Below, piece by piece: positions 767 to 61,900 of a stretch of 64,000 bases of DNA; within the stretch, counting starts at the first letter, position 1, and the number at the start of each line of letters is the position of its first letter. The DNA comes from Macrostomum lignano (lineage: Eukaryota), in NCBI GenBank assembly GCA_002269645.1, contig NIVC01002150.1:136150-200149 (forward strand). The letters run 5' to 3'. Below the pieces are notes generated by a model. That model searched no databases, was not told the DNA's origin, and saw only the letters and a list, made by a program, of their open reading frames with translations. Made by a program: the position numbers and the translations under genes.

Positions 767-770
767 ATTA

Positions 771-2410: not shown

Positions 2411-2454
2411 CGATGAGGCATTATTACTTTATTCGGTAATATAGTTATTATATA

Positions 2455-2652
2455 TCATTTAACTTCATTTGAGTATTCGAAAGCTGCATTTGAGTTTTTC
2501 AAAAGCATCATTTGAGCTATTGGAACTCATCATTTGAGTACGAGCGTATTCGAAATCATCACTCGAGTTATTCGAAATCATCATTTGAGTTATTCGAAAG
2601 CATCATTTGAGTTATTCGAAAGCATCATTTGAGTATTCGGAATCATCATTTA
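2455..2652. repeat. Degenerate ~22-bp tandem repeat (ATCATTTGAGTTATTCGAAAGC)
   Basis: About 8 imperfect units read directly. Confidence 0.75.
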
Positions 2653-8145: not shown

Positions 8146-8440
8146 CAGGGGTCCCTAACCTTCTACAGATAGTAGGCCACATTTACAACTGGCTTAGGTA
8201 TGTGGGCCACACGCTCCTTCACTTCCTTTATCCCCCTCAACCCTTTTAACCCGCAACCCCTATATCCTTTACCTTGAATATTGATATTACCTAGCATTCC
8301 TTCTTACTTTTCACTTCAACTCTTGAATGCATATACATTTGTGCACTAGGAGTGGCTAAAATAGCAATCCAAATGAATTGAAGTGTCAGGAGCCACAGTG
8401 AAATCCAATGATAGACTCAGTGGGCTGAATGTAATGCAAA
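8146..8440. mobile_element. Decayed hAT/Charlie-like element (left end clear, right end approximate)
   Basis: Terminus CAGGGGTCCCTAACC preceded by CTCTATAC, resembling the NTCTAGAN Charlie target. The right TIR is not recognisable. Confidence 0.4.
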
Positions 8441-19300: not shown

Positions 19301-20187
19301 GAGACAGGTAGACTGAGAGAGAGGGGGGTGAGACAGGTAGACTGAGAGAGAGGGGGGTGAGACAGGTAGACTGAGAGAGAGGGGGTGAGACAGGTAGACT
19401 GAGAGAGAGGGGGGTGAGACAGGTAGACTGAGAGAGGGGGTGAGACAGGTAGAATGAGAGAGAAGGGGGTGAGACAGGTAGAATGAGAGAGAGGGGGTGA
19501 GACAGGTAGACTGAGAGAGAGGGGGTGAGACAGATAGAATGAGAGAGAGGGGGGTGAGACAGGTAGAATGAGAGAGAGAGGGGGTTAGACAGGTAGAATG
19601 AGAGAGAGGGGGGTGAGACAGGTAGAATGAGAGAGAGGGGGGTGAGACCGTTAGAATGAGAGAGAGGGGGTGAGACAGGTAGACTGAGAGAGGGGGTGAG
19701 ACAGGTAGAATGAGAGAGAGGGGGGTGAGACAGGTAGAATGAGAGAGAGAGGGTGAGACAGGTAGAATGAGAGAGAGGGGAGTGAGACCGTTAGAATGAG
19801 AGAGAGGGGGTGAGACAGGTAGACTGAGAGAGAGGGGGGTGAGACAGGTAGAATGAGAGAGAAGGGGGTGAGACAGGTAGAATGAGAGAGAGGGGGTGAG
19901 ACAGGTAGAATGAGAGAGAGGGGGTGAGACAGGTAGACTGAGAGAGGGGGTGAGACAGGTAGAATGAGAGAGAGGGGGATGAGACCGTTAGAATGAGAGA
20001 GAGAGGGTGAGACAGGTAGACTGAGAGAGGGGGTGAGACAGGTAGAATGAGAGAGAGGGGGTGAGACAGGTAGAATGAGAGAGAGGGGAGTGAGACCGTT
20101 AGAATGAGAGAGAGGGGGTGAGACAGGTAGAATGAGAGAGAGGGGGGTTAGACAGTTAGAATGAGAGAGAGGGGGTGAGACAGGTAG

Positions 20188-20225
<38 letters not shown>

Positions 20226-21095
20226 GAGACAGGTAGACTGGGAGAGTGGGTGAGACAGGTGATAATGAGGGAGGCAGAGTAGCGTCAAGGAATTGGAGTC
20301 TGTTGGTCTCAGATTTACTCAGGAAGGATGGGGAATTCAAACCTGTCAGTCACTAGAAAGCAACTCCTCAGTGTCCTGATGTTCCATTATAATTTCTGCA
20401 GAGCTCCGCCGGGCAAGCAGCCACCATTTGCTTTGCAAATCGCCCGCACCCCGTCTAAACGGTGGCCGCAAGACGACGGCACGTCGACATTTTCGTTGAG
20501 CTTCGGCCTCGCCGACGTACTGCGTGAACGCGGCGTCAGGAGCGCCGCCCCCGACGACATCGCCGCCAGCGCCTCGCTGCACCGGCTGCACCAGCAGCAG
20601 CAGCAACTGCCGCGGCGGCAGCGGTCCCGCCAGCCGAGCACCAGCGCCGGCCTGCCGTCGGCAGACGACGAATCCGCGTCTAGACAGCGATCGGCGTCGT
20701 CGTCGGCTTCTTCGACGGCGGACAGCAGCAACGCGGCGGCCTCGGCGTCGGCCGAAGGCGAGGAGGATGACGAAGCGACGCCGACGCACGACGGTTGGTT
20801 TTTGCCGACGCTGGGCGCCGGCCTGAGCGCCACCCTGCGCAACCTGCTGCAGGGCGTCAGCCTGGTCGCTGGCGGCCCCATGCCGCCGTCGTCCTCTTCG
20901 GATTCGTCGACCTCTTCGGCCAGCCCGCCGCTGCCGCCGGCCACCATCGCCGGATTGAATATCTTCGGCCAGACGACAGTCGAGACTTCTTCGACGGCTA
21001 ACGCCTCCGCGGCGCCTGGCGCAGTCGGCGGCGGCGGCGGTATTGTTCATCGGGTGTCGTCGCTGAGCCCGGCTGACCTGGAGCCGCCCAGTTGA
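10340..21095 (+). CDS. TRAK: Trafficking kinesin-binding protein (TRAK1/2, Milton), HAP1_N + Milton domains, ~1030-1060 aa. Exons 10340-10367, 10579-10886, 11492-11608, 11680-11780, 12209-12524, 13318-13685, 14112-14360, 14744-14797, 15986(or 16082)-16201, 16592-17100, 18185-18401, 20402-21095
   Basis: Diagnostic motifs LAEVELVSLVTESLPRYKLRAD, QMTKAYHDIEAVTRLLEE|RETDLELAARIG, PEKLQLVKPIEGSLTLAQWRRLA and TYTYTNSKVMHPTD. All junctions are GT-AG and phase-consistent. Exon 1, the 54-nt exon and the choice of acceptor at 15986/16082 are less certain. Confidence 0.93.
10992..11370. repeat. 52-bp minisatellite, ~7 units, TRAK intron 2
   Basis: GTACCCTAG recurs at 10992, 11044, 11096, 11148, 11200, 11251, 11302. 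Confidence 0.95.
11812..12190. repeat. 30-bp minisatellite (CTCTGTCACAGGAATGATTATCCATTCCCT), ~12 units, TRAK intron 4
   Basis: Direct reading; explains the repetitive ORFs at 11616-12211. Confidence 0.95.
12550..13150. repeat. 40-bp minisatellite (GGATTGCTAATCTAGCCTTTGGCAATGTGCTGGGTATAAT), ~14 units, TRAK intron 5
   Basis: Direct reading. Confidence 0.95.
13785..14065. repeat. 33-bp minisatellite (GAATAAGTCAATGGGATTCTCTGATTGGTTGGT), ~8 units, TRAK intron 6
   Basis: Direct reading. Confidence 0.95.
14490..14680. repeat. 19-bp minisatellite (CACATTCCCCTGCAAACTG), TRAK intron 7
   Basis: About 6 near-perfect units plus degenerate ones. Confidence 0.9.
15147..15965. repeat. 18-19-bp minisatellite (CTGACCCTATTCTCTCCC), ~45 units, TRAK intron 8
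   Basis: Direct reading. Confidence 0.97.
17126..18025. repeat. 21-bp minisatellite (GAGATCCATGAGGATTGTATT), ~43 units, TRAK intron 10
   Basis: Direct reading; source of the 331/333-aa artefact ORFs. Confidence 0.97.
18422..20260. repeat. Purine-rich ~26-30-bp minisatellite (GAGACAGGTAGACTGAGAGAGAGGGGGT), ~65 units, TRAK intron 11
   Basis: Direct reading. Confidence 0.97.
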
Positions 21096-33600: not shown

Positions 33601-36600
33601 CTTTTTGGGACTTAACTAATCCTTTTTGGGACTTACCTAATCCTTTTTGCGACTTACCTAATCCTTTTTGCGACTTACCTAATCCTTTTTGGGACTTAAC
33701 TAATCCTTTTTGCGACTTACCTAACCCTTTTGCGACTTACCTGATTCCTGTTGCGACTTACCTGATCCTTTTTGCGACTTACCTGATCCTTTTTGCGACT
33801 TACCTGATTATTTTTACAACTTAGTTTGCTTCTTTTGCGAATTGTTTTTCTTTTGCTTCATTATTTTCCCTGAACTGCTCTTTCTTTCGCTTTCCTCTTG
33901 CCTTTCTTGGTTCTTGTGTTTTTGTGTTTTTGGTTGACTCAATTTTGCGACTTACCCCTGGTCAGCCACGATTTACGGTGGCCGAATCGGCCAGGTCGGC
34001 CAGCAGTTGCGCATGTATGATGTAATGTCAGCTGGCATAATATACAGAAATCAATAGGATTAATAACAGTGCCACTTTTCCATATTCCCTTGAAATGTAT
34101 AAGCAAAATTTAGCTTATTTAATTATATTATGTTTTAACTTTTTTCGTAGGTATTTTACACTGAAAAAATATTTTAGCGCCAGAACTAGATTTTAGCGCC
34201 TCAGTCTAGATTTTAGATAGGTTATAGGTATAGGTTAGATATATAGGTTAGGGTTAGAAAGTTGACAGATTTTTTTAGATTTCATGGCTTATGGGGAGCA
34301 TCGCTGAGATGTCAAGGGGGGAAGTTGATATGTTAAAGCTTGTGGGGGGGGAATAACTGACATGTCAAGGCTTACAAGGGACTGCTTTCAAAGCAGTATA
34401 TTAATGCAGAGATATTGCAAAGAGATGCTACATGTAGCTTATTACAAAACTTGTACTGCATTTTTTGGCTCCCCAACGCTAAGATACTAAGCTAAAAAAT
34501 ACTACTAGCGCTTCACAAACTTATGCAGATGTCAGGCTGTAGGGTTAGTGTTAGCGTTGGTGTTAGGGTATAGGGTTAGGGTTAGGGTTATAGCGTTAAG
34601 ATTCGGGTTAGTGCTAGGGTTAGGGTAGCTTATAACTTAGCTCATGTAGCTTATTAAAAATGTTTATCATAGAAGCGTCATGCAAAAATAATGGAAGCGT
34701 CATGTGAAAAATAATGGAAGAGTCATGCAAAAAATCATAGAAGCATCATGCAAAAACTCATGGACAAAAGATTAAATTTAGGGTTATGTTTAGGGTTAGG
34801 GTTAGGGCTATTAGAAGTTTTACAGGAGATTTTTTAAGATTTCAAGGCTACATGTAGCTTATTAAAAAACGTTTATTTCATTTCTTTAGCTCCCCAACGG
34901 GGGCGTAGATTGCTAGTGCTAGCTCTTAGCGCTACAGTCTAGATCTTAGCGCTACAGGCTAGATTTTAGCGCCATAGACTAGACTTTAGCCCCACAGGCT
35001 AGCTTTTTGTGTTTTTGCACCTAGGAGAGATCTTTATTCATTCCTAGGGGGTCTTTGACCACCTTGACCTCCCCTTGATAATCCCTCATTGAGGTTAATC
35101 CTTATTTGAGGGAGAGCAGTTGGGGAGGGAATTGAGAATTAAATATTCTCAATCAAGCCTGTTGTTAATTCTCAAACAACAACAGACAGCCGCAGTCTAA
35201 GCGAACCACAAAATCGGCGAGAGGCGGCGCATCAGCTTCGGCGAGAAAGTTCGCATCAACCGGTAGACGTCAGCGCGATGAAGCGGACAGCGACAGTGAG
35301 GACAGCGACGGCGAGGACGACGACAGTGAAGAAAGCGATAGCGACGGCGCACACAACGCCGATGAAGGCGATGCAGGCGAGGCCGTTGATGCCAGCGCCG
35401 AGCTGGCCAATCAGCTGTACACGGATGAGGGCGGCCCGCTCGGCCAGCTGGACGCCGAACAGCTGCGCTCGTTGATCGCCGAGAAGCGAACAGAAATTGA
35501 CGAAGAATTGGTGTCGGGCGTCGGCGGCGGCAGCGAGGCCGGTGCCAGCCGGGTCAGCAGCTGTTTGCCAGACTCGGTGCGGGAGCACTTCGAATCCTGC
35601 CGAGCTGTGCTCAGCCAGTACCGCAGCGGCAAGCTGCCCAAGCCTGTGAAACAGTTGCCGCATTTTTCTCAGTGGCAGGAACTGGTCGAACTGTTGGATC
35701 CAAACTCTTGGACTGCGGCGGCAATGTGTGCCGTTACTAAATACTTTGCCGCTAAAGGGAAGACGCAGGCTTTGCAATTCTTCCAGGTGAAAAATGAATA
35801 TTTTTCTTCGGATATATTGTACAAAGTCGTAGTGGCATTAGCTGTCTAATTGAATCGGTGTGCTTTTCTAATAGCAAGACAACGTTGACGGCAGGGAGAA
35901 GGGCGCAAAGACTGAAGAAAGAAAGGCGGGGGGAGACGAGAAAGGCAAGAGGAGGGAAGAGATATGTGAGAGGGAAGAGAATGGCGAGAGAAAAGAGAAA
36001 AGCGAGAGGGGGGAGAGAAAGGTGAGAATGAGAAGAGGAGGGCGAGGAAAAGTGAGAGGTGAAGAGAAAGGCGAGAAGGGGCGAAGAAAAGCGAGAGGAG
36101 GGCGAGGAAAAGGGAGGGTAGGGTGAGGAAAGGCGAGAGAAGGAGAGAAAGGTGACATGGGGCGAAGAAAGACGAGAAGAGAGTGAGGAAAGGCAATTGG
36201 AGGTAGAGAAATGCGAGTTGTGGCTGTAGCCGGGAAATGAGAAGTGACAGTATCAGATATGACAAACTGAGAAGAAAAATATAGAAAAGAATACAAAAGA
36301 TGTTTATCTTTTTACGTAGGGTAGCAGACTAGTCATTTTCACCATTGCTTTGTTAATATTAGTCTTATCGCACAGCCCCTGACCCTCTCGCGCAGGGCTA
36401 CTTGCTTCCCCGCTGTCGCGACGACATAGCCGAGTATAGGCGTCTTAACTTTCACTTGTACTCGGCGCTGCGCAAAGCACTGTTTAGGCAGCGGGAGTTT
36501 TTCTGCGGCTTACTGCTGCCCTGGGCTAGGGAGTCGATCTCCCTGCCGGAGGCTACGATCATTGGGGGCCTGTTGCGCCGGGTCAGCATCCCTGTAAAGT

Positions 36601-36968
36601 ACGCCGCCCCGGCCCTGCACATGCTGCTGCAGCTGCCGTACAGCGGCGGCCGGGCCATTCTAATCCGGGTGCTGCTGGAAAAGAAATATAACCTACCGGA
36701 TCCTGTGCTTGGCCAGGCTTTGGCTCATTTTGTTGCTATGGAAACAGATTCGGCCGATCACCTGAACGAGGACGGTCGGCTGCCGGTGCTTTGGCACCAG
36801 GCTCTGCTGGCGCTGGTTGAACGCTACGGCGACTACTTGAGCGGCGACGAGCGGCAGCGCCTGTTGCGGCTGTGCCGGCAGCACCAGCATCCGGAGATAA
36901 CGCCGGCTGTGCGACAGGCTCTCGGGGCGCTGCAACAGCGTGACGCCAGAATGGAGACTGCCGACTAG
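27671..36968 (+). CDS. BYSL: Bystin (Enp1), 40S biogenesis factor, 458 aa. Exons 27671-27805, 30590-30657, 35186-35786, 36396-36968
   Basis: Motifs SLADDI, YVDSKLSQKIL, VLSQYRSGKLPK, WTAAAM, LLPRCRDDIAEYRRLNFHLYSALRKALF, LLEKKYNLP, LPVLWHQALL, HQHPEITP. GT-AG junctions are phase-consistent (1377 nt). Confidence 0.96.
28485..29900 (-). mobile_element. Decayed hAT transposon with transposase remnant in bystin intron 1 (right boundary approximate)
   Basis: Minus-strand 28770-28950 reads IPPFQADDLTFLLEYKKAMAPVVRALDVFQGKQHCSLGTL/LPTI, matching the hAT FLxEY..ALDxxQGE..LLPT motif. Terminus CAATGATGGGCAC at 28485 with CGCTA/TAGCG subterminal repeats. Confidence 0.6.
31193..31257 (+). other. 28S rRNA-derived fragment, second copy
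   Basis: GGTAAACGGCAGGAGTAACTATGACTATATTTTTTAAAGCTAAATGCCTCGCCAGCTAATTAGTG; shares the GGCAGGAG variant with copy 1. Confidence 0.88.
32200..32465. mobile_element. Partial Charlie-like hAT MITE nested in the 2.9-kb element (left boundary approximate)
   Basis: End GTTTGCCAACCCCTG (32451-32465) followed by CTCCAGAG (NTCTAGAN-like). The reverse complement matches 46880-46930. AG-rich interior. Confidence 0.65.
32600..33830. repeat. ~20-21-bp minisatellite (TTTTGCGACTTACCTAATCC), roughly 55-60 units, inside the hAT element
   Basis: Direct reading; the core TGCGACTTA equals the subterminal motif of the hAT family. Confidence 0.95.
34160..35010. repeat. Internally duplicated repeat with interstitial TTAGGG-like tracts
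   Basis: TTAGGG-type runs at ~34220-34260, 34540-34626 and 34778-34808. Duplicated blocks GCTACATGTAGCTTATTA, GCTCCCCAACG and CTAGATTTTAGCGCC. Confidence 0.7.
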
Positions 36969-43619: not shown

Positions 43620-43627
43620 TATTTAAA
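43620..43627 (+). promoter_or_regulatory. Putative TATA box of the lysozyme-like/VWA gene
   Basis: TATTTAAA ~30 nt upstream of TCAG at ~43653, followed by a 5'UTR intron at 43722-43788 (GTAAGT..TTTTTCAG). Confidence 0.45.
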
Positions 43628-43804
43628 AAGCCGACAGCCGCGCCCTGATGCTCAGCAGACAGCTTTCGCAAGCAGTAAAAATTGGTTGAAACTTCACTGT
43701 TTACCTCTGACAGACCAGACGGTAAGTATGCTAGATTATGAACTACAATATCAGGTCTCTAGATTTTACTCTTAAACTTGTTTTTCAGAAAGCAAATCTT
43801 CCCG

Positions 43805-45442
43805 ATGGTCCGCTGGGTCCCAATTCTCGCACTGCTGTGCGCCATCCTGCACGCTATGCGGCCCGTGACCGCGGCTGTGGATCAAACTCTGCAGCCGAAA
43901 GCTAAAGGGGCCGACGTGGTCCGAGCCACAGTTCGCAAGATCCGCAACAGCTGCATCTTTCCCAACGACTTAGGATTTCTATTGCGCGTCGCATATGTGG
44001 AGTCGAAATTCGGCCTCAACGCCAACACGTTTCGTTCCGACGCTGATGGTTTTGGCAAAGGCATCTGGCAGTTGGACAAAATCGGATTCGACGACACCAA
44101 ACTCGGAAGCAGTACAAAAAGAAACTTGGTGAAGGAGAAGTTCGGAATCGACTGGACAACTATGACATACGCATCCGCTAACATGAACGTGCCGCTCTAC
44201 AACGCTCTTGCTGCGCGACTGCTGCTCTCTCGAAAACCGGCCGCGATTCCATCTGGCATTGAAGCGCAGGCCAAATATTGGAAGACCTATTACAACAGTG
44301 GCGCTGGCAAAGGCTCTGTAGATAAATTTATCAGCGACGTCAAGAGCATACAGCCTTGCAGTACCGTTGGTGCCGACCTGCTATTCATCCTGGACGCTAG
44401 CGGCAGCATCGGATCCAGCAACTTTCAGCTCATGAAGCAGGTGCTGATTGCAGTTGCTAATAAATTAACGATAGGCCCCGCGGCTACGCAGGTAGCTGTG
44501 ATCACGTTTTCCAGCCGAATAAATGAGAAGATAGAATTTGGCCAACATTCAACACTGAGCTCTTTGACTTCGGCCATTAAAGCGTTGTCGTACACAAGCG
44601 GAGGCACGAACACGAATCTGGCATTGGATCTCGTCGGATCCACGTTCCAGTCTGCTAGACCTCTGAGGGAAGGCTTTCCCCGGCTGCTTATCGTGCTGAC
44701 AGACGGTGAATCGAATAACCCTGAAGCCACTCGCCTGGCTGCGAACAGACTGAATGCGTACAGCTGGCTTGAGCGCTACGCCGTTGGCATGGAATCGGAC
44801 GTAAATCATGATGAACTGGAAACCATCGCGTCATGCTCGCATGTTTATATTATAAAATCTGTCAGCGAGATCACCGGCCTGACGGACGATCTTTACGAGC
44901 TCGCCTGCCAATCGTCGGTTGCGCTGCCTACGGTCAATGCCGGCTTCGCAACCATGTCTGGAACGCTGCCGCCGGGCACGCCTCGGAATGTGCGCGACAC
45001 GGCGGTCTCTCGCGCTATCGGAAGAACCTACGCTCTGCAGGTGACTTCCGGTTGGGCTAATCTCTACGTGTCCCTCGGCATGGAGAACCCGAGCTCTGCT
45101 GTCAATGACTACTCAGCGGAGGCGACCCCAGGCCGATCGGCAGTCGTGTTTGTCAGCTCCGCAGACCTGGCAGCCTCATCTTCTCCGCTGAGCAGGCGCA
45201 AACGCGAGCTGTCCAGCAGCGGCAGCAACTCCAGTACGGCCGCCAACTCAAGTATCGTTTTGTACCTGTCGATTGTACCCAAAGAAGACAGCGGGTCGGT
45301 GACGTACACGCTTGAAGCCCGCGATGGCGACGCTCGCTCGCTTTATCCGAACTCAAACGCTGGCGGGCCAACACTGCTGCACTGGTCGAAGCTGGCTTTG
45401 CTCGTGGGCATGGCGATTGGCGTGGTCGCGGTTTTTGATTGA
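43805..45442 (+). CDS. Secreted, probably GPI-anchored protein of 545 aa: signal peptide + lysozyme-like domain + VWA domain + beta-rich domain + hydrophobic tail; single coding exon
   Basis: Signal MVRWVPILALLCAILHAMRPVTA. Lysozyme-fold motifs VAYVESKFG and GIWQLD, plus AKYWKTYYNSGAGKG. VWA with intact MIDAS (DASGS, GGTNT, LTDG). RRKR at 45194-45205. C-terminal NSNAGG + LALLVGMAIGVVAVF. Confidence 0.9.
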   Translation: MVRWVPILALLCAILHAMRPVTAAVDQTLQPKAKGADVVRATVRKIRNSCIFPNDLGFLLRVAYVESKFGLNANTFRSDADGFGKGIWQLDKIGFDDTKLGSSTKRNLVKEKFGIDWTTMTYASANMNVPLYNALAARLLLSRKPAAIPSGIEAQAKYWKTYYNSGAGKGSVDKFISDVKSIQPCSTVGADLLFILDASGSIGSSNFQLMKQVLIAVANKLTIGPAATQVAVITFSSRINEKIEFGQHSTLSSLTSAIKALSYTSGGTNTNLALDLVGSTFQSARPLREGFPRLLIVLTDGESNNPEATRLAANRLNAYSWLERYAVGMESDVNHDELETIASCSHVYIIKSVSEITGLTDDLYELACQSSVALPTVNAGFATMSGTLPPGTPRNVRDTAVSRAIGRTYALQVTSGWANLYVSLGMENPSSAVNDYSAEATPGRSAVVFVSSADLAASSSPLSRRKRELSSSGSNSSTAANSSIVLYLSIVPKEDSGSVTYTLEARDGDARSLYPNSNAGGPTLLHWSKLALLVGMAIGVVAVFD

Positions 45443-47136: not shown

Positions 47137-50100
47137 CTAAACGCACGCGTAGGTCCTGGGCGCTACGCAGATAATTTGACTGTCCTCCGCCATTCGGTCC
47201 AGCAGGCGGCGCAGCCCGGCCTCCGTCAGGCCCGGGTAGCAGCCGCGCCGCTCCCTCCGCAGCCGGCCCAGCAAGGCCAGCTCACTGACTCCGCCGCCGC
47301 TGCCCGTAGGAGCCGCCGCCGACGCCATCGACGCCGATGCTCCACCTCCTTCTGTTGAAGCGTCTCGCAGATGGCGCAGCGTCGCCACAATGTCCGCCCG
47401 AAGTCTCGAGTCGGCCTCGCACAGCTGGTACTGCTGGCGGCCAGTGTCCTCGCATAGCCAGGCCCGCAGCTGGCCGGATGCGACCAGCGGATCCAGCAGC
47501 CCCGACTTGATCGCCTGCTTGGTGCCAATCGACGACAGCCAGTTGGCGCTGAGCAGCAGATCCGGCAGAGTGAACTGGTGCAACCGGTGCGCGCGCAGGT
47601 GCTCAACCAGGCGCTCCTGAGACTGAGTCTCCTGGGAGATTGTGTTTTCGTTATTGAAACAGACTTTAAATCAGTTAGAGTTGCTTGTTTGGCGATAAAT
47701 TAAAATAGAAAACTGAGAATCTGAATTAAGGCTTCGACGTGTTATGAATTTCTGTACACTAAAGCCTAACCTCCTCTAACCTCAACACCCAGCTTATTTC
47801 TGTGTTTCATCAGAGAATACACTTACTGCATTTGTTACATTTTAATGTCGAAAAAGTTGCATAATAATGCCCGATACATACGGTACAGCCGGGGCGTCGC
47901 CACAAAGGGAAAGGGGACATGTCCATGTCTTCATGTCTTCAGGACGCCTAAATGAGTGCCTGCGGCGCCTAAATGAGTGCCTGCGGCGCTAAAATGAGTG
48001 CCTGCGGCGCCAAAATGAGTGCCTGCGGCGCTAAAATAAGTGCCTTCGGCGCCAAAATGAGTGCCTGCGGCGCTAAGAGCGCTAAAATGAGTGCCTGCGG
48101 CGCCTAAATGAGTGCCTGCGGCGCCTAAATGAGTGCCTGCGGCGCCAAAATGAGTGCCTGCGGCGCTAAAATGAGTGCCTGCGGCGCCAAAATGAGTGCC
48201 TGCGGCGCTAAGAGCGCTAAAATGAGTGCCTGCGGCGCCTAAATGAGTGCCTGCGGCGCCTAAATGAGTGCCTGCGGCGCCTAAATGAGTGCCTGCGGCG
48301 CCTAAATGAGTGCCTGCGGCGCCAAAATGAGTGCCTGCGGCGCTAAAATGAGTGCCTGCGGCGCCAAAATGAGTGCCTGCGGCGCCTAAATGAGTGCCTG
48401 CGGCGCCTAAATGAGTGCCTGCGGCGCCAAAATGAGTGCCTGCGGCGCTAAAATGAGTGCCTGCGGCGCCAAAATGAGTGCCTGCGGCGCCTAAATGAGT
48501 GGCTGCGGCGCCTAAATGAGTGCTAACAACACCAATTCCCAAAATAATGTAGGAATTTTGTCATGTAGAATTCCTGACATTGTCCCCCCATCATAAAAGC
48601 CGTTTTGATGGTTCCAGGCTAATCAGTAAATGTGACGAGGTTTTGTTCGAAATTTAAATTCATATTGGCTTCTCCGTTGCGTTAATTTCGGCCCTGTAAT
48701 CTGATTTGATAGCCTGTCTACTAACGGTAGTATATACCGGTATGGAGATACGCAGCTATACATGTGGGCGAGGTGGCATTGATCACAACGTTTTCGCATC
48801 TCTTTCACTCTGTAGCAACGGAAAAAGACTTAGGTTCGATTTTATTGAGAAGCCAATAATGCTGCAAGTATTGTATAAGCGAATGCAACTCAGCGGAAAC
48901 GCGTTCCACTTTCGCGCCTCTCTTAGTTCAATTCTCTCCTATTAGGGCTCGCCCCGAAGGCACAGAGCGTGTGTGCTGAATTGCCTTAGCGTTGGCGTTG
49001 TGACAGGATGCCCGCAACCCTCCTGCGAGCATTCATGTACATGTATATTTATCTACAGGCCGAGTTCTCACTCACCCGGTGCTTGGCCGCCTCAGCCAGG
49101 CGAACCTGCCTGCTCAGCCCGTCGGGCAGCCGCAGCCGCAGGCTGTAGCCAAACTGGCAGCTCGGATCGGCCAGCTGGGCCAGCCTGCTCAGCCTGAGCA
49201 GCTCCTCGCCAGGCTCGGCCACCCGATGATAGCCGCAGCTGAGCTCCCGGCTGCCGCGGAATTCCCGCACCAGGCCCCTGGCGTGCAGGCTGAGGCCCGG
49301 CCTGGGCGCCGGCTGGGCCGCCTCGGCCGCCTGCGTCTCCGCTAGCAGCAGCTCAGCCAGGCTGTCCTCAGCACCCAGCGTTGTCAGGCCGGCCAGCGCG
49401 GCTGTTGCGACGGCGCTGCTATCGCCGTAGGAACTGCCAGTCGTGGTTGCTATGGCAACCGCGTCGAGCTGCCTGGCCGCTCGGAAACTGTGCAGCGACG
49501 GCGGCGGCGGCTGCCGCGGCTTCCACAGGGTGCAGCCGATTGAGCCGGTACCGTCGTCAACTGCAAGGAGGAAGATGGGACGACTGCACTCAGATACTGG
49601 CAGTTTGGGAAGGGGGGCAGGGTATGATTCAGATAGGGCTGATGGCCAACTCCTAATCCTCAGTGAGTCGCTACGATCACATGACCCTTTAGTGAGTCGC
49701 TACGATCACATGACCCTTTAGTGAGTCGCTACGATCACATGACACTTTAGTGAGTCGCTACGATCACATGACACTTCAGTGAGTCGCACCTACCCTCAAT
49801 ATTTCAGTGAACCGCAACTATGCCAAGATGAATCAGGGAAGTCGCCACTATCCCCTGACACTAGTGGGCTGCCACTATTCCGGGACTCAAAAAGCAGCAA
49901 CTACACCAACTACTAACAAGTAGCATAACTACGAGTAGCAAAAAAGTATCTTTTACGGTAAATCCAAATTGAACGTGAGACAGGGCAGAGGTGTGCACTA
50001 TTATTGCTAATTATTAAAACTCAGCTGTGCGGGTGTGGCACAAAAACTTCGCTCACATCTGGTTTGGCCCACCGCCCCCCCCCCTAGTCCGCGCGAACTC

Positions 50101-52177
50101 ACCCAGGCACTTGAAGTAACCGTCAAACTCCGTAGCCGAACGGCACAGCCCGATGACGTCAAACTTTCTGACCAGCTTTCTGCCTACTCGATATGAGACT
50201 CCGCCGTCTATAGCGGGTAGATGGAGAGATGGAAAGAGATAGGAATTACATAATGAGTAAACAATTTTCTCTTAAAGCAAGCGGAGCTTTTAAAAAGAGC
50301 GCGGCGGAGGAAGAGACTGATATTTGGAGGGCAAGAAAACTTTTTGGAGAAGTACTTTTAACTTTCTAAGCTAGAGATAGTCAACAATAAGTAGCTGTTT
50401 GATAAGCTTGCTGAGCAGGTGAGATAGAGTGACAGCGGCGACAGGTAAAAGACTGGTAGATGGCGTAGAAGAGTAAGTGCGACAGGTAGAAGGTGTACAA
50501 GAGCAAGGAAGACAGGTAGAGGGCACAGAAGAGAGAGGGAGACAGGTAGAAGGCACAGAAGAGAGAGGGAGACAGGTAGATGACGCAGAAGAGAGAGGGA
50601 GACAGGTAGATGGTACAGAAGAGAGAGGGAGACAGGTAGATGGCACAGAAGAGAGAGGGAGACAGGTAGATGACGCAGAAGAGAGAGAGGGAGCCAGGTA
50701 GAAGGCACAGAAGAGAGAGGGAGACAGGTAGAGGGCACAAAAGAGAGGGAGACAGGTAGATGGCACAGAAGAGAGAGGGAGACAGGTAGATGGCACAGAA
50801 GAGAGAGGGAGACAGGTAGAGGGCACAGAAGAGAGAGGGAGACAGGTAGAGGGTACAGAAGAGAGAGGGAGACAGGTAGAGGGCACAGAAGAGAGAGGGA
50901 GACAGGTAGATGGCACAGAAGAGAGAGGGAGACAGGTAGAGGGTACAGAAGAGAGAGGGAGACAGGTAGATGGCACAGAAGAGAGAGGGAGACAGGTAGA
51001 AGGCACAGAAGAGAGAGGGAGACAGGTAGATGACGCAGAAGAGAGAGGGAGACAGGTAGATGGTACAGAAGAGAGAGGGAGACAGGTAGATGGCACAGAA
51101 GAGAGAGGGAGACAGGTAGATGACGCAGAAGAGAGAGAGGGAGCCAGGTAGAAGGCACAGAAGAGAGAGGGAGACAGGTAGAGGGCACAAAAGAGAGGGA
51201 GACAGGTAGATGGCACAGAAGAGAGAGGGAGACAGGTAGATGGCACAGAAGAGAGAGGGAGACAGGTAGAGGGCACAGAAGAGAGAGGGAGACAGGTAGA
51301 GGGTACAGAAGAGAGAGGGAGACAGGTAGAGGGCACAGAAGAGAGAGGGAGACAGGTAGATGGCACAGAAGAGAGAGGGAGACAGGTAGAGGGTACAGAA
51401 GAGAGAGGGAGACAGGTAGATGGCACAGAAGAGAGAGGGAGACAGGTAGAGGGCACAGAAGAGAGAGGGAGACAGGTAGATGGCACAGAAGAGAGAGGGA
51501 GACAGGTAGATGGCACAGAAGAGAGAGGGAGACAGGTAGAGGGCGCAGAAGAGAGAGGGAGACAGGTAGAGGGCACAGAAGAGAGAGGGAGACAGGTAGA
51601 TGGTACAGAAAGGAGAGGGAGACAGGTAGAGGGTACCGAAGAGAGAGGGAGACAGGTAGAGGGTACAGAAGAGAGAGGGAGACAGGTAGATGGCGCAGAA
51701 GAGAGGGAGACAGGTAGAGGGTACAGAAGAGAGAGGGAGACAGGTAGATGGCGCAGAAGAGAGGAAGACAGGTAGAGGGCACAGAAGAGAGAGGGAGACA
51801 AGTAAATGACGCAGAAGAGAGAGGGAGCCAGGTACATGGCGTAGAAGAGAGAGGGAGCCATGTAGAGGGCTTAGAAGAGACTGCTTGTCACGCCGGCTGC
51901 GGGTCAACTTTCGCCTCGATTTTCTATAGAGCCTAAAGCCCACACTGAAAGCTAAAAAGCGAAGAGACAGACGGATAGATGGCGCATAGAAACTAAAAAA
52001 AAACGAGCTAAAAAGTCTATAATGCCATTAGGCACGCCGCTAGCACTCACCGAGAGTGGACACAGCAGGTGCACTCAAGATGGCGCCAATGCAGACTGGC
52101 AGGTGCTGGCAGCAGGCTGGATCCAGCTGGGCCGCCTGCTGCTCCGCTGTAGGCTGGCCGTCATCGCCCAGCTGCAT
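47137..52177 (-). CDS. STN1: CST complex subunit STN1 (OBFC1), ~403 aa. Exons 52177-52051, 50207-50103, 49560-49076, 47631-47137
   Basis: N-terminal QLDP motif; OB fold KLVRKFDVIG..CL|VDDGTGSIGCTLW..LHARGLVREFRGSREL; C-terminal winged-helix-like region ending MAEDSQIICVAPRTYACV. Junctions are phase-consistent (1212 nt). RPA2 is the alternative, but the N-terminus and length favour STN1. Confidence 0.82.
47887..48620. mobile_element. Imperfect-TIR element (family of 26918-27171) with internal 21-bp minisatellite (AAATGAGTGCCTGCGGCGCCT, ~27 units, 47945-48520), STN1 intron 3
   Basis: Left GGGGCGTCGCCACAAAGGGAAAGGGGACATG matches the reverse complement of 27140-27171. The right end reverse-complements to ..CTTTTATGATGGGGGACAATG, like 26935-26960. 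Confidence 0.6.
49660..49790. repeat. 30-bp tandem repeat (TAGTGAGTCGCTACGATCACATGACCCTT) x4, STN1 intron 2
   Basis: Direct reading. Confidence 0.92.
50435..51880. repeat. 30-bp purine-rich minisatellite (GAGACAGGTAGATGGCACAGAAGAGAGAGG), ~48 units, STN1 intron 1
   Basis: Direct reading; source of three ~500-aa artefact ORFs. Confidence 0.97.
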
Positions 52178-54502
52178 TATGACAGTGCCGAGCAGGGCTG
52201 CAACTATAGGCAACGTAAACTGCCTAAATTCAATACAATCATCAGTATATCTCATAATTAGTCTCTACTGAAGTTGTTAGGCTGCGCTACAATGAGGCCC
52301 CCAGCTGTGATTCAGCTTGAGTATCTTAAAATTTATCGGTTACTTTCGAAATTGCGCCACTTGGCTCATTACCGTATAGGAAAGCTCGAATAAATGTGCA
52401 AAAAATAAACTTGCAAAGCTCGGTTTGATTTGGTATAATTCAAGGCTGCGAATTTCCGCTCAGATAACTTATTTGAATCATTCGAATTAATGGACAGATG
52501 ATGTTCGAAAAAGGCGTGTGTGGACAAATCGACTAAACGATTTCCCTTTTGTGCCGTCATTTAAGTTTCTTCCATAGACAATGAAGGCGTGGGGTGTAGA
52601 GGGATGAGTGAGTGGTTTTTGCCATAGACAGCTTGCGCTGTTGCACGTTTTTGTGGTGAAGGGAATTAAAAATCAAATAATTTAATTTGAGTTTCAATGG
52701 TAAAGACAGGCATTAGTAAAGATCAAATCGTTAGTCAATGGGAAAATCAATGTGGGACTCGAACAGAAGGTAATCTGCTAAGGTAATGATTAGGTATAGG
52801 ATAAAACATTATTTTTGAGGGAGCTATTTGTATAGAAATGAAAAAAGCTACCGAAAAAGACACGTTTATCTCATATCAAACATAGACGTAAAGATTTACG
52901 AGATTTACGAGAGTCTTTCAAAGTCTTGAAAGTCTTTAAAGCAATCCAGTTTCCGTAAGTAATTACGGTTTGTTATAGAATTGAAAGCATAGACGGGTCT
53001 CATCCACTGATAAAATTTTACATAATAGAACCAGAAGACAGGCAAAACCTGCTTCTGAAGTGCGCTCTCAAGAGATTGTGCACGAATAGAGTTTAATCAT
53101 GCAATTATAGACTTGTCTAATCCTGTCTCAGAGATTGACAGGCAAATCCTAAGTCTGTCCCTTCTACAAAAACAGCAATTATTGTCTCATTAAACGGCGC
53201 AGCGAAGGACAGAAAGAGAGCACAGCCCCGCTTGCGCTTGTTTACCCGCTTTCACTGTTGCTGCCCCAGCAATATATGCCCTGCCTGTCGTTATGAAAGC
53301 TTATTAGAGCTACAGGCCTGGAGTGTAGCGATAAAACTAAAATCCGTTGGTTGTCAGCCACGGAGAGAAAAATCTGGGTCGCACAGCAAGAAACCATCGC
53401 AGTGGCATTATTAGGCAGGGGCCAGAGGGAGGGGAGGCAGCGAGAAAGCGCTACTCTGACCCTCGCTGAGGCTCGCTTGCCAGCTAGTACGAGTAGAGCT
53501 GAGCAGACTCGCATTAGCAGCACGATTATGCAGATAAGGAGCACTGCATCAAAAAACAATGAGTTGTTGCGCTAAATTGTGCTTGTATTAGGCTCGTATA
53601 GAGATGCTTAGATGAGTACAGCAAGGGACTTTTATGCTAGAACCGACAACGTTTAACTAAATCTCAGCTGGTCTTAATTCAACTCATACTTGCAGCATTC
53701 CTTGTATAGAAAGAGAGACAGACAGACAAGGACCGACCAGAGTGTTTACTGCATGGCAAAAGAGTAACCCGAGACCCAGACAAACTGGTCGAAAAAGAAA
53801 CGAATGTCAGGGGGGCTTGTACGAACTATACTATTCTATTGAACACGAGGGTGAGAAAAAATCTACCGAAAATATACAATACTATTGGTTTACGAATAAC
53901 ACACACCCGTCAATTCCTAGAAAGAAAGCTAAGAATCGTAATACATATATAAACTTTTTCTGCCAAGGAGTTGAAACAGACAGTCACTAAACTTTCGCAA
54001 CATCACAGAACACAGAATTGAGATCAGTGCGTTAATTAACCTGGCTTCAACACTGGAATTCTATCGAATCGGCAAATGACAACGGGTAGGTGAAACGTGT
54101 TTACAATGGTCCAACTGCACCAGTGGTCGTTCTGATCTGATAGAATACGATATAATTGAAATAGGCCTTACCCACTGCAAGATGGCTAGGTGGTATGCAA
54201 CAGAACAGCCGTTGCAATAGCGCGGCGCATCCAAAGGCTGCGTACAGTTTTTACAGTGCTGAGACTGGGAAGTCGCAACTCCCAGCCTGTATTTATATGA
54301 GCTGCTTCTACCGCAGCTCAAATCTGCTATCCTATCACAGCAGAGTAAACTGGAGCTTAGATTAAGTTGCCACTCGTTCACGGTGGATGCTTTAAGGAAT
54401 GACAAAAGGCAATTCAGCTTGCATGATAACCATGACAAACTCTGCTTAACAAGTCCCGATTGCAACAAGACTTAAAAACCTATTTTAACCTTTTAATTGC
54501 AG

Positions 54503-55830
54503 AAAGCAGCCAGCGCATATTCCTGACCCAAAGCAGCCGCTCACCATCCGCTGAGGAGGCGACCACCACGCTGGCTGTGACTCGAACCATGACCACAAGA
54601 ACAAGCGCCACAACGCCAATGACTACGAGGTCTCGAACGGCAACGGTCGCCGAGAGTAATGAGCGAATGGCAACGGAGCGTCAGCGCCGAGCTGAGGGCG
54701 CGAAACGCCTAGCCAGGCTGGAGCGAGCCAGCAGCGAGTTGGCCACCTACGGCCGGCGCAGGTTTGAAGCTACAACCGACGAGACAACAGTGCCAGCATC
54801 AGCCAGGCAACAAGTCGACGAAATTGGGTCTAAGTGCGGCCTATCGCCATACACAACAGTTGTCATGGAGACAGAGACTACGCCGTCGCCGCGCGGTCCA
54901 GACAGCGGCGAGAGGCAAGCCGGTCGGATGCGGGCACGTCTAATGAATGAGCTGAGGCTGCGCCAGCCAGAGCTACCAGTCCGGTTCAGGCACGATCGGA
55001 CAGCACAAGAGCTGACCCAGGAAGGCTGCCTGACCTCTCGATCTACTCGCATCGCCGGCGGCTACCCATGGCCAGTGAACTACAAGTACACTCCATTTCC
55101 AGAGCCGCGCTTGCAGCGTTGGACTTCGGCCCAGCGACGTCTTACAGCGGAAGCTATTGCCGCGGCAGAGGAATCGGAGCATGCGAAGGACGCGGGAGCA
55201 GACGACAGCATGGCCCAGACTGTGCTAATTGAACTGGCAATTCCGGCGATGTCACAGAAATCGCCTTCGCCGACGCATCCGCACGTTGTATTTGATTTGC
55301 CAATGGTGACAATGTCGCTGCCGCAGCACCACCCACGCAAAGCAAGCGACAGTCAGCTGCCGACGACTACGGGCAAATTCACCGGCCTGGCACCGGCGGA
55401 CAATTCTAGCGTGAAGTGGCAGCGAAGCAAGTCGCAGTCGACGGTGCAGAAGCACGCGCCGCACCGATTGCTGTCCGTGTCAACCATTGGCGACGAAGAG
55501 CGGTCCAGACGGCAGACCCAGCTGCAGAGACTGGCCCAGGTGTGCAACAGGCTGAGCAGCCATCGCCAATGCACCAAGGACGGCGCAGCGGAGGCCAGTA
55601 AAACGGAGTGCAAGCACAAGACAGATGCTATAGACTATCTAGTGGAGGAAATCGAGGCGGCCGTGGCCAACGGCGGGCCGCTGTTCCGCACTGGGGCTGA
55701 AGAGTCAGACGATCAACTACCGGCACTGGCTTGCCCTGGCTCACTCGCTAAATCGCGTCAGCACCTGACCCGAAACTGGCTGCGGCAGCACCGCTTCCAA
55801 GGAGCTGGACCGTCGGTCATCATTGGCTGA
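54503..55830 (+). CDS. Large terminal exon (or single-exon ORF) of an unknown Ser/Thr/Arg-rich, probably disordered protein
   Basis: 456-codon non-repetitive GC-rich ORF (54460-55830) with acceptor-like TTTTAATTGCAG ending at 54502. Upstream exons not identified; no domain recognised. Confidence 0.6.
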
Positions 55831-58903: not shown

Positions 58904-61900
58904 TCATTTAACAGCCCAAGAGCAGGTGGGATTAATCTTGAGCAGGTAATAAATCTGTGTGTTACCGGGCAGCCGGCGCTCATTGATGTTGCCGCCAACC
59001 TCGTACAGGGAGGTGGTGGAGGGGTCGCAGCCCAGCCCGTGAAGAACTTCGGCAGCGGTGGTGGACGGCGAGATTGGAACCAGCTGGCTGCGGTTGGTGC
59101 TGGCCTGGTGAACACTGATGCTTACCTTGGTGAGAGGGGGTGAAGTGGTCAGGTATGGGAAGTTGCTTGATTAGCGCCGAAGTGTGCAGTAGGAGTGCGC
59201 AAGCGGTCTACTTTTACTAAAGGCTGTTAGTGAATTTGGGAGGCTACTGAAGGATCTGAGAGGCTACTAAAATCTGACGGGCTGTTGAAGGATCTGATGA
59301 ACAGATAAGTTTAGATCTATTTATAGATCAAAAAGGGGTCACTAAAAACAGGGGATTAGATTACTGAATTAGGATCAGATAAGACAGCTGATGTATTGGA
59401 TGGGCAGCTGAAGTATCGGATGAGACAGCTGAAGTATCGGATGGGACAGCTGAAGTATCGGATGGGACAGCTGAAGTATCGGAAGGGACAGCTGGAATTG
59501 GATGGGACAGCTGAAGTATCGGAAGACAGCTGAGTATCGGATGGGACAGCTGAAGTATCGGAAGGGACAGCTGAAGTATCGGATGGGACAGCTGAAGTAT
59601 CGGATGGGACAGCTGAAGTATCGGAAGGGACAGCTGAGTATCGGATGGACAGCTGAAGTATCGGATGGGACAGCTGAAGTATCGGATGGGACAGCTGAAG
59701 TATCGGATGGGACAGCTGAAGTATCGGATGGACAGCTGAAGTATCGGAAGGGACAGCTGAAGTATCGGATGGGACAGCTGAAGTATCGGATGGGACAGCT
59801 GAAGTATCGGAAGGGACAGCTGAAGTATCGATGGGACAGCTGAAGTATCGGATGGGACAGCTGAAGTATCGGAAGGGACAGCTGAAGTATCGGATGGGAC
59901 AACTGAAGTATCGGATGGGACAGCTGAAGTATCGGAAGGGACAGCTGAAGTATCGGAAGGGACAGCTGAAGTATCGGATGGGACAACTGAAGTATCGGAT
60001 GGGACAGCTGAAGTATCGGAAGGGACAGCTGAAGTATCGGAAGGGGACAGCTGAAGTATCGGATGGGACAACATGCGACAACTCACCTGCTGGTTTTGGA
60101 TCGATGTCGCAGAAGTTGAGCTGTTAAACACCGGACTGTCAACAACTGCAGCTGCCAAGAGGATACGGGCGTTTTTGCTGCAGCAGCGCTGCCTGCTTGC
60201 GCAACAGTTTGGCCGCCTTCTTGGCGCTGCTGGCGCCGCCGCTGCCGCTGGTGCTGGCAAGCTGGCTTAATTTATTAGGCGGCTCGCGCAACTGTTTAAT
60301 TAGAAACTCTGGCACGCTCCACACTATGGTGCGATATTTAATGAGCATCTCAACTAATCCGATTAGATTGCCAGTCTCAGCCAACAGATTGGCGCCTTCT
60401 CGTTGCGCTTTCTTCGAAGATTGAATGGCGAATAAATTTGGCGCCATGACGGTTGCTATGGCTTTCAGATTCATTCGATTGTGCTTGTGCTGCTCGATTA
60501 CCTGACAGAGGGTGAATTGTGTGTGGGAGATCGAATATCATACTGATTAAGCTGAAGCTCAACTTACACAGGACTTCGCGCCGATGGCTAGGGAGGAGCG
60601 GGTAAGATAGAGAATAGCTGGGGCAGGGAGTAGGGAGAGAATAGCTGGGGCAGGGGGTAAGGGAGAGAATAGCTGGGCAGGGGGTAAGGGAGAGAATAGC
60701 TGGGGCAGGGGTAAGGAAGAGAATAGCTGGGCAGAGGGTAAGGGAGAGAATAGCTGGGGCAGGGGTAAGGGAGAGAAAAGCTGGGGCAGGGGGTAGGGAG
60801 AGAATAGCTGGGGCAGGGGGTAAGGGAGAGAATAGCTGGGGCAGGGGGTAAGGGACAGAATAGCTGGGGCAGGGGGTAAGGGAGAGAAAACAGGCAAAGA
60901 AAACTTGGGGTGGTTGAATATAGAGACCCAATTTCAAATCACGATATGTGGAAAAAAAACTCTACACTAAGACTTAGGGTTGAAAAAAAACAATCAAGAA
61001 ATGCGCAAATCATTTTCATGAGACAGACGCGCACCTTAGCAAACAAGTCGACCATCAGGCGCAGCGTGCTACAATTAGGCGTTGGCAACAGCAGCACAAG
61101 CAGATTAAGGCCTAACAATCTGTCCATATCGTGCTGAATACAGCGCAGTTTTAAATAGAAATCCGCATAGGCTGTTGACGTCAGCGGCTCGGGCAGCTCA
61201 CGCAGGAAGACCTTCAACAGGCCGGCTAGGTCGTGCCAGTCAGCGGTCAGACGCTGATGCTGCTGCTCGGTGTCGGCCATCAGCGCCTTGATGCCGGCTG
61301 ACTCGGCCCGCTCCCTGGCCTGGCGGATTCTCTGCAGCGAGCCGGGGACGCGGAACAGGCCTTCGGTGCGCAGCGCTTCCGGCCGTTCAAGCTGACCGAC
61401 AATCCAGCGGACCAGCTGAGGCACCCCGTCGCTACTGGAGCTGCCGCTCTCCTTAGCAACCAGCTGGTCAAGCGGCACGCCGAAACAGCTGGCAACAACA
61501 GAGCGCCGCGAGGCCGACCGGCCGCGTGACGACGGCTTCCTAAACGCCGGATCGCAGTCGTATTTATCGAACAGGGCGGCCAGCTCCAGGTGGGCCAGAG
61601 CTCGAATCTGCTGCCTATCTGGCTCGCTGAAATCGAATATGCTGGCATTGCCCAGGCGGTTGTTGGGCAGTACGAAGGTCGGGTATTGCTCAAGGCCCGA
61701 CGTGGCAACAGGTGTAGCACCGCTGCTTACAGATGGAGCCTGTGAAGGAGAGGACAGAGAAAAACAGTGATACGAGTAGTAGCGTGTGGTCCGTGTGGAA
61801 TTAAAACAATTTTTGAAGGCCGATCAATTGTAACTTTGTCAAATTGAAATAATAAAAGATGACAATAAAATAAGCCCCTGATCCTCTGGCAAGGCGGCCA

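Follow-up and report, generated by a model that had tools for sequence, protein, structure and literature searches.

Could an animal have built a protein of its cell surface around a domain that phages use for cutting bacterial cell walls? This question is raised by a gene of the flatworm Macrostomum lignano which lies in a stretch of 64,000 nucleotides (contig NIVC01002150.1 of GenBank assembly GCA_002269645.1, positions 136,150 to 200,149 of the forward strand). The whole stretch is called the window below, and all coordinates count from its first letter. The gene encodes a predicted secreted protein in which an N-terminal domain related to phage proteins is followed by a VWA domain. A preliminary description, made from the letters of the sequence, had taken the N-terminal domain for a lysozyme or lytic transglycosylase of the phage/bacterial kind. 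The features on which it relied were all in place: the AYVES motif with its Glu codon at 44000-44002, the GIWQ motif, a VWA domain with a full metal-ion-dependent adhesion site (MIDAS), a hydrophobic C-terminal tail and the hydrophobic region of a signal-like peptide. The assignment itself drew support from the conservation of ES and GIWQ, from profile alignment with hhalign, from the placement of both motifs in an AlphaFold2 (AF2) model and from the gene contexts of the phage members. Sequence comparison and modelling together support the view that the domain is a divergent branch of the lysozyme/lytic-transglycosylase superfamily with motifs closest to those of GH23. We give a probability of about 0.55 to the further reading that the protein is a surface-tethered or shed wall-cutting enzyme, in which Glu66 would act as general acid on the glycan backbone of peptidoglycan while the metal site of the VWA domain would hold the enzyme on a ligand, and that it would serve antibacterial defence or the digestion of bacteria.

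Relatives of the N-terminal domain in phages and bacteria

The gene corresponds to one open reading frame (ORF) in the six-frame list, 43778..45442 on the plus strand, whose first ATG, at 43805, gives a protein of 545 amino acids. The coding sequence and the elements of the N-terminal domain are listed here, with the evidence in brackets.

43805..45442, plus strand: coding sequence in a single exon, 545 amino acids and a stop codon (ORF list; an identical protein is recorded for NIVC01002150.1, GCA_002269645.1)
43874..44359, plus strand: lysozyme-like (divergent SLT/GH23-like) domain, residues 24-185 (PHROG 3108, AF2 model, Foldseek, hhalign)
44000..44002, plus strand: GAG codon of Glu66, the candidate catalytic acid, followed by Ser67 and lying within AYVES, residues 63-67 (motif position and conservation)
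44060..44077, plus strand: GIWQLD, residues 86-91, probable counterpart of GLMQ in family-1 lytic transglycosylases (conservation, model, profile alignment)
44288..44314, plus strand: YYNSGAGKG, residues 162-170, a signature in common with phage proteins and possibly the AYNxG motif (conservation)

The domain was matched by PHROG 3108, a phage protein family of unknown function (E = 9.2e-18, 65.5 bits, profile positions 30-154 of 160). With the domain alone as query, word-indexed searching gave one protein only, and the relatives described here come from an exhaustive profile search. At E<=0.001 this returned 1,477 representative clusters, of which 73 reached E<=1e-30, and the values for relatives went down to E = 1e-63; on such sequence scores the likeness of the domain to its relatives is far beyond chance. 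The family is carried by at least 310 stretches from IMG/VR; in bacterial genomes, whose species belong to many phyla, at least 85 stretches carry it. A tblastn search with the domain found it in 22 phage records, with Klebsiella, Salmonella, Pseudomonas, Vibrio, Shewanella, Pseudoalteromonas and Komagataeibacter as hosts, and the proteins of the Klebsiella phages read YWKK(W/Y)YNTSAGKGT. The preliminary description had likened the domain to a family of phage and bacterial proteins with the motif YWKxxYNTxxGKG, and the PHROG 3108 match, the tblastn records and the Klebsiella motif show that the likeness to phage proteins is real. Many of the bacterial matches came from predatory bacteria (Micavibrio and Pseudobdellovibrionaceae/Bdellovibrio-like species), in addition to Campylobacterota, Magnetococcales and Cellvibrio.

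The ES and GIWQ motifs are the most conserved positions of the family. Among 285 domain copies Glu66 is retained in 273 (96%) and Ser or Thr at position 67 in all 285, and Glu66 is invariant in the alignment that covers phage and animal members. Within GIWQLD the same copies keep G in 280 cases, I in 277, W in 260, Q in 202 (71%) and D in 206 (72%). YYNSG (residues 162-166) is conserved as well (Y in 255/285, N in 202/285). The Glu is replaced in 12 of the 285 copies, for instance in the first repeats of two relatives, which read YVQT (P0007) and WVDT (P0018).

Membership of the window protein in PHROG 3108 is seen both in the profile match and in motifs shared with Gp54 of phiKO2 and S6a_00066 of Klebsiella phage VLCpiS6a. 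The phage proteins of this family are stand-alone, measure about 150-165 amino acids, lack a signal peptide and in some cases have E-T in place of E-S, whereas the window protein, which is 26-31% identical to them, adds a signal peptide, a VWA domain, a beta-rich domain and a likely anchor signal.

The stand-alone phage members are encoded in lysis cassettes. In VLCpiS6a and in Pseudomonas phage PSA28 the gene order is small terminase (TerS), family gene, a holin with three transmembrane segments and a 156-amino-acid protein with an N-terminal transmembrane segment; the neighbour with three transmembrane segments belongs to Pfam Phage_holin_3_3 (E = 1.3e-12). In phiKO2 the order is Gp53 (three transmembrane segments), Gp54 (the family member) and Gp55/Gp56, and a survey of spanins lists a two-component spanin for this phage (PMC6139136). 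The genome note on Salmonella phage PMBT28 names a holin and no endolysin (PMC6025938). The association was counted at 160 further loci from IMG/VR and bacterial genomes, with naive ORF calling and with loci that are not mutually independent. An ORF of at most 200 amino acids bearing a transmembrane-like segment adjoins 94 of 146 small family ORFs (64%), as against 12% of 280 control ORFs of similar size from the same loci (odds ratio 12.7).

A different arrangement is found in the large members. In all nine family ORFs of at least 500 amino acids the domain stands at the extreme C-terminus. The gene of one of them, a protein of 985 amino acids, lies downstream of a Phage_nozzle gene and is flanked by a T7_gp14-like gene on one side and, on the other, by an ORF of at least 966 amino acids which runs off the contig end; by gene order this is the position of a T7-like internal virion (ejection) protein. 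The likeness to the virion lytic transglycosylase of the T7 gp16 type is that a T7-like phage carries a putative wall-cutting domain as part of a large protein inside its virion. T7 gp16 carries an SLT domain at its N-terminus, whereas here the protein that occupies the place of gp15 has the family domain, which the SLT model fails to recognise, at its C-terminus. The endolysin slot and the virion ejection protein are the two classic sites at which phages keep peptidoglycan-cleaving domains. The phage members thus hold the places of endolysins and of virion-associated lysins, a result that applies to them and not to the flatworm gene, and these two gene contexts are the strongest functional evidence for the family.

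The sole endolysin annotation in the VLCpiS6a genome belongs to another gene, S6a_00032 (ON602731.1, 13577-15706), which is labelled 'endolysin; inhibits RNA polymerase' and adjoins an adenylosuccinate synthetase gene. Pfam identified its product as a dATP/dGTP diphosphohydrolase, which rules it out as an existing endolysin of this phage. Diphosphohydrolase and adenylosuccinate synthetase form a gene pair typical of phages with 2-aminoadenine (dZ) DNA, and PMBT28, which is related to VLCpiS6a, is treated as a dZ phage in the literature.

Predicted fold and candidate catalytic motifs

The domain was modelled with AF2 on an alignment of 52 sequences; the model made from the single sequence was unusable, with a predicted local distance difference test score (pLDDT) of 40. 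The alignment-based model is mostly helical and has a pLDDT of 94.8 and a predicted template modelling score (pTM) of 0.90. In domain numbering, Glu45 (Glu66 of the protein) is placed at the C-terminal end of helix 37-46 and GIWQ between beta residues 64 and 69. Such an arrangement is known from goose-type lysozymes and from SLT domains.

When the model was compared with the PDB by Foldseek, enzymes of the lysozyme superfamily made up eight of the nine best neighbours and nine of the 19 listed. They comprised the GH23 chitinase 3w6b, a GH19 chitinase, a GH124 cellulase, i-type lysozymes, fungal muramidases, Tse3 and destabilase, and the top neighbour was the GH23 chitinase of Ralstonia sp. A-471. 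Among the predicted viral structures of BFVD there were four significant matches, all of them uncharacterised phage proteins; the best has 1,021 amino acids and a template modelling score (TM-score), normalised to the query, of 0.80. Behind these four family members followed weaker matches, mostly entries named LT_GEWL, SLT, destabilase, muramidase or endolysin. The fold evidence for a lysozyme-like domain, which comes from a model, reaches the superfamily level only.

Profile comparison pointed in the same direction. SLT was the sole Pfam family touched by more than one family member (5/52, below threshold, best E = 0.0022). An hhalign comparison with a profile of five E. coli sequences (Slt70, MltC, MltD, MltE and MltF) gave a probability of 43% (P = 2.5e-4) for the animal alignment and of 69% (P = 4.5e-5) for the mixed alignment of phage and animal sequences. 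In these alignments the ES and GxxQ of the family are paired with the catalytic ES and the GLMQ of the E. coli enzymes; the alignment stopped short of YYNSG. MltD of E. coli K-12 has GIWQ exactly, after the catalytic VES, and Slt70, MltC and MltE have GLMQ. A search of PDB sequences with the family profiles found nothing significant; the top lead was EtgA (E = 0.36), aligned on AxxES and GIxQ, and the other leads were judged to be due to chance.

The window family can therefore be set beside the GH23 family-1 lytic transglycosylases and goose-type lysozymes, of which Slt70, MltC, MltD and MltE are examples. Common to both are a single putative or established catalytic Glu followed by Ser at a helix end, a G-(L/I)-(M/W)-Q element about 20 residues further on and the use by phages both as an endolysin and as a wall-cutting domain borne on the virion. 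A later Y-N-x-G stretch may correspond to motif III, and the fold predicted here is mostly helical and resembles the lysozyme type. The window family differs in that it has no significant match to the SLT model (PF01464), no PDB relative by sequence and TM-scores below 0.5, and also in a longer spacing between motifs II and III and in the specific block PLYxALAARL ... IP ... QAxYWKxxYN. Because the curated model fails to recognise the domain, it cannot be filed as GH23. The Pfam models of c-type, i-type, phage-type (GH24) and GH25 lysozymes did not match residues 22-190 at E<=10 either, and the statement in the preliminary description that the domain is not an animal lysozyme of the c-, g- or i-type is borne out by the lack of any Pfam family match at this cut-off.

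Two other families of phage enzymes were considered. The Enc34-type endolysins (PHA02564; PMC8943055) resemble the window family in being a recently recognised, divergent and mostly helical lysozyme-like fold with no sequence likeness to known lysozymes. Identity with them was rejected, since the Enc34 structure was absent from both the PDB sequence matches and the Foldseek PDB matches. The peptidase family of rusticalin was rejected as well, rusticalin being an L-Ala-D-Glu peptidase. A literature search on the family motifs, the PHROG number and flatworm proteins with VWA or lysozyme domains found no description of the family.

Architecture, animal relatives and origin

The remainder of the protein contains the following elements.

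43805..43873, plus strand: putative signal peptide, residues 1-23, MVRWVPILALLCAILHAMRPVTA (inspection; hydrophobic region VPILALLCAIL)
44375..44884, plus strand: VWA domain, residues 191-360, with complete MIDAS, between Cys185 and Cys368 (Pfam PF00092)
44924..45319, plus strand: conserved beta-rich domain of about 130 amino acids, residues ~374-505, which follows the VWA domain in orthologues (alignment of 18 relatives)
45194..45205, plus strand: RRKR, residues 464-467, a furin-type dibasic site in a variable loop of the C-terminal domain (cleavage presumed)
45347..45439, plus strand: GPI-anchor-like (glycosylphosphatidylinositol) signal, consisting of the small residues NSNAGG, a spacer of eight residues and the hydrophobic end LALLVGMAIGVVAVFD (inspection)

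The VWA domain matched Pfam PF00092 at E = 8.8e-37 (127.4 bits against a cut-off of 23.8). Its MIDAS motifs are DASGS (197-201), GGTNT (266-270) and LTDGES (298-303), with D197, S199, S201, T268 or T270, and D300 as the residues concerned, and its nearest solved relatives in the PDB are collagen VI, the mussel protein PTMP1 and the integrin I domains. The beta-rich domain had no match in Pfam or in the PDB.

Several of these elements recur in relatives. The N-terminal domain begins 20-25 residues past a hydrophobic N-terminus in the relatives too. Of the 18 aligned VWA-bearing relatives, 7 have an RxxR site in the equivalent loop of the C-terminal domain (RRKR, RTKR, RRRR, RKRR, RQRR, RVKR and RHRR), and a hydrophobic C-terminus that follows small residues and has no cytoplasmic tail is found in at least 10 of the 18. 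In the window protein this tail comprises residues 530-545. The C-terminal pattern of the window protein and its relatives resembles a GPI-anchor signal, and the suggestion in the preliminary description that the protein is tethered or shed fits both the RxxR site and this tail. On this alignment the window protein can be regarded as one member of a conserved invertebrate architecture, in which a signal peptide is followed by a lysozyme-like domain, a VWA domain, a beta-rich domain that contains a furin-type site, and an anchor signal, the functional labels being predictions. That the architecture represents an old and widespread invertebrate family, that it includes a further conserved C-terminal domain and that relatives have chitin-binding partners had not been part of the preliminary description.

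Most of the best 150 clusters look like secreted animal proteins, and some have two or three tandem copies of the domain. The cnidarian members come from corals and an octocoral (Acropora, Orbicella, Oculina, Desmophyllum and Paramuricea) and the echinoderm members from the sea stars Acanthaster and Patiria and the brittle star Amphiura; the annelid Owenia and the tardigrade Ramazzottius add further members. Among 57 multidomain relatives, 37 have VWA domains and nine have chitin-binding CBM_14 domains, while others contain EGF, MAM or LDLa domains. The arrangement of the domain before a VWA domain recurs in uncharacterised proteins, including one from the brittle star, and the Owenia protein combines two domain copies with a chitin-binding type-2 domain. 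Where the sources name these relatives at all, the name is always 'uncharacterized' or a generic label. Some relatives (P0003, P0007, P0008, P0019 and P0023) consist of three or more tandem domain copies and no other module. The closest single-domain relative (P0001, 48% identity) is encoded at 56-790 of a Logan contig of 1819 nucleotides from SRR18067529, which is low in G+C and eukaryote-looking. The protein begins not with a signal peptide but with a long extension in which Pro, Lys, Gln and Asp are abundant and which contains near-repeats of VPKAA.

The domain of the window protein has a mean identity of 48% to other animal members. The mean is 42% for the C-terminal domains of the large phage proteins from metagenomes, one of which was shown to lie within a T7-like module, and 26-27% for the small members from phages and prophages. 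Its closest non-animal relatives are thus the domains of the large members. When a tree was built by neighbour joining, the animal sequences fell in with the domains of the large proteins, apart from the extensive radiation of small endolysin-like members. Given the broad spread of the family in phages and bacteria, it would be most economical to suppose that an early animal received the domain from a marine phage or from the host of such a phage. The animal family most likely goes back, as far as the sequences tell, to an old horizontal transfer of this kind, after which VWA, EGF, chitin-binding and anchor modules would have been gained.

One close homologue (P0005) had the appearance of a bacterial fusion of lysozyme and VWA domains. 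It lies on ENA contig_23547 (1-15903), which also has bacterial genes and whose G+C content is 64% at first and about 45% past ~7.5 kb. The gene of the homologue is situated in the part with about 45% G+C and is frameshifted (10001-11008, continuing at 10998-11510). In view of the abrupt change in G+C content and the frameshift the contig is probably chimeric, and a bacterial origin of the fusion was rejected.

Around the flatworm gene the window consists of repeat-rich DNA typical of eukaryotes, with several minisatellites and a strong strand skew. Upstream of the coding sequence two elements were noted by inspection.

43621..43630, plus strand: presumed TATA-like box (TATTTAAAAA), about 180 nucleotides 5' of the ATG
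43722..43789, plus strand: putative short intron of the 5' untranslated region, GTAAGT ... TTTTCAG, with canonical splice-site consensus

An orthologue that is 63-70% identical to the window protein is encoded on a contig of 1,845 nucleotides, the size of an mRNA. Elsewhere in the window there are long minisatellite arrays at 17080-18133, 19651-20340, 47931-48542, 50358-51943 and 59356-60260, which are open in several frames and encode repeat peptides such as ILMDLN, GAAGTHF and LPVSLSLL. Very strong local GC and AT skew accompanies minisatellites in rows 14001-16000, 18001-20000 and 50001-52000. An ORF of 264 amino acids at 1617-2411 on the minus strand has a YADD motif and resembles, by eye, the C-terminal part of a retrotransposon reverse transcriptase. 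Two more non-repetitive ORFs, both on the plus strand, lie at 54460-55830 (456 amino acids) and 36402-36968 (188 amino acids).

Proposed function of the protein and its significance

According to the reading that we favour, the protein would be a secreted flatworm glycoprotein that a GPI anchor probably attaches to the outer leaflet of the cell membrane and that a furin-type cut at RRKR may release. Glu66, at its helix end and backed by Ser67 and the GIWQ element, would serve as general acid, and the domain would be a muramidase or a lytic transglycosylase that cuts the beta-1,4 backbone of N-acetylmuramic acid and N-acetylglucosamine in peptidoglycan. The metal-ion site of the VWA domain may hold the enzyme on a ligand in the matrix, in mucus or on a microbial surface. 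The whole protein would then be an antibacterial or bacteria-digesting effector, surface-bound or shed. Phages would use the same domain in two ways, as a stand-alone endolysin whose gene adjoins those of holin and spanin, and as a warhead at the C-terminal end of T7-like ejection proteins.

Several observations weigh against this reading. The N-terminal domain (residues 22-190) had no Pfam or NCBIfam match, even at E<=10, so that no curated lysozyme or SLT model was reached. The Foldseek comparison of an AlphaFold model, which the preliminary description had proposed as a check, gave top neighbours nearly all of which belong to the lysozyme superfamily, but none of the PDB matches reached E<=0.001 (TM-scores 0.43-0.48, E = 0.5-8). 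The hhalign alignments extend over no more than about 35 columns and have moderate probabilities, and against single E. coli sequences the probability was 0.6-1.8%, which is non-significant. Asp91, the second carboxylate, is retained in 72% of copies only, and hydrolase and transglycosylase chemistry are therefore not told apart by the sequence. The phylogeny that had likewise been proposed placed the animal sequences with the domains of the large phage proteins, but the neighbour-joining tree has no support values and leaves a single animal clade unsettled. The literature yielded no activity report for any family member. Finally, chitin-binding modules stand beside the domain in nine relatives and the best PDB neighbour is a chitinase, and peptidoglycan is therefore not the sole candidate substrate.

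This last point leads to a different account of the domain, in which it is an active glycan-cleaving domain whose substrate in animals is chitin or another matrix polymer of N-acetylglucosamine (in cuticle, tubes, peritrophic-like layers or mucus) and whose role is matrix remodelling. Many enzymes with a lysozyme fold also cut chitin. CBM_14 domains in 9 of the 57 multidomain relatives, the Owenia protein being an example, would suit such a role, as would VWA, EGF, MAM and LDLa partners, which are typical of matrix proteins, and the order of the PDB neighbours, where the GH23 chitinase of Ralstonia sp. A-471 is followed by a GH19 chitinase. These chitinase matches are weak, however (E = 0.5-1.2), Pfam found no chitin-binding module in the window protein, and the nearest non-animal relatives are phage proteins for which peptidoglycan alone makes sense as a substrate. 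We therefore regard a chitin or matrix substrate as unlikely, while giving it more weight than any other alternative. It might also be thought that the domain has lost its activity in animals and serves as a glycan-binding (lectin-like) or structural module of a VWA-based adhesion or matrix protein. Reuse of a lysozyme fold without activity is known from alpha-lactalbumin, the combination of VWA, EGF and a GPI-like tail resembles adhesion and matrix proteins, as does the proximity of the VWA domain to collagen VI, PTMP1 and integrin I domains, and a few repeat copies (the 12 of 285) have replaced the Glu. The retention of Glu66 in 96% and of Ser/Thr67 in 100% of copies, in animals and phages alike and in the window protein itself, argues in contrast for selection on catalysis, and a non-catalytic role appears improbable to us.

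The idea that this is no working flatworm gene at all, but DNA from contaminating bacteria or phages, an artefact of the assembly or a recent insertion that is dead, takes its appeal from the absence of introns in the coding sequence, from the phage relatives of the N-terminal domain and from the occurrence of the P0005 homologue on a metagenome contig with bacterial genes. That contig looks chimeric, with its drop from 64% to about 45% G+C at 7.5 kb, whereas the window gene lies inside a 200-kb contig of M. lignano, surrounded by minisatellites and a reverse-transcriptase-like fragment. Its ORF is intact and is fused to modules of eukaryotic type (a VWA domain bracketed by a probable disulfide, a furin site and a GPI-like tail) in an architecture common to other relatives; a TATA-like box and a putative short intron with canonical ends stand upstream, and the 63-70% identical orthologue comes from the mRNA-sized contig of 1,845 nucleotides. 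Contamination or artefact must accordingly be rated as very improbable.

Animal lysozymes are usually counted as c-, g- and i-type, together with a few acquisitions of phage-type and GH25 enzymes. These two and the GH23 g-type lysozymes of early animals represent other cases of horizontal transfer. With these acquired lysozymes the window family has in common that a putative wall-degrading enzyme of bacteria or phages is found in animals, that it is patchy among invertebrates and that it is secreted. It differs in belonging to another sequence family and in being multi-domain and probably membrane-tethered, while the classical enzymes are small and soluble. The lysozyme content of early-branching animals is still under discussion, and surveys of GH23 g-type lysozymes in these animals make no mention of VWA-fused proteins or flatworms (PMC12855814, PMC11576321).

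Domains of the lysozyme superfamily, phage lysins and the horizontal transfer of lysins into animals are already known. The branch described here, its spread among invertebrates and the tethered VWA architecture appear to be new. It is tempting, if still tentative, to see in the window protein the founding example of an unrecognised class of lysozyme-like animal proteins and of a new family of glycoside hydrolases or lytic transglycosylases, that is, a phage-derived, tethered antibacterial enzyme guided by its VWA domain. An early animal would then have taken the fold from the ejection protein or the endolysin of a marine phage. Over hundreds of millions of years it would have been preserved among cnidarians, echinoderms, annelids, flatworms and tardigrades and turned into a membrane-tethered, furin-processed enzyme, and the family would supply the 'missing' endolysin of many phages whose present annotation includes none.

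If this is true, a family invisible to curated models changes the inventory of animal lysozymes in corals, echinoderms, annelids, flatworms and tardigrades and adds a clear case of gene flow from phage to animal. Through its fusion with VWA and anchor modules, a wall-cutting enzyme could be positioned at the surface of an epithelium, a placement that the small soluble lysozymes do not have. Methods for RNA interference, in situ hybridisation and transgenesis work in M. lignano, and the role of the protein in the animal is therefore directly testable. For phage biology, the results provide a testable function for PHROG 3108, and they point to candidate endolysins and ejection enzymes in phages that infect Klebsiella, Salmonella, Pseudomonas, Vibrio and many marine bacteria.

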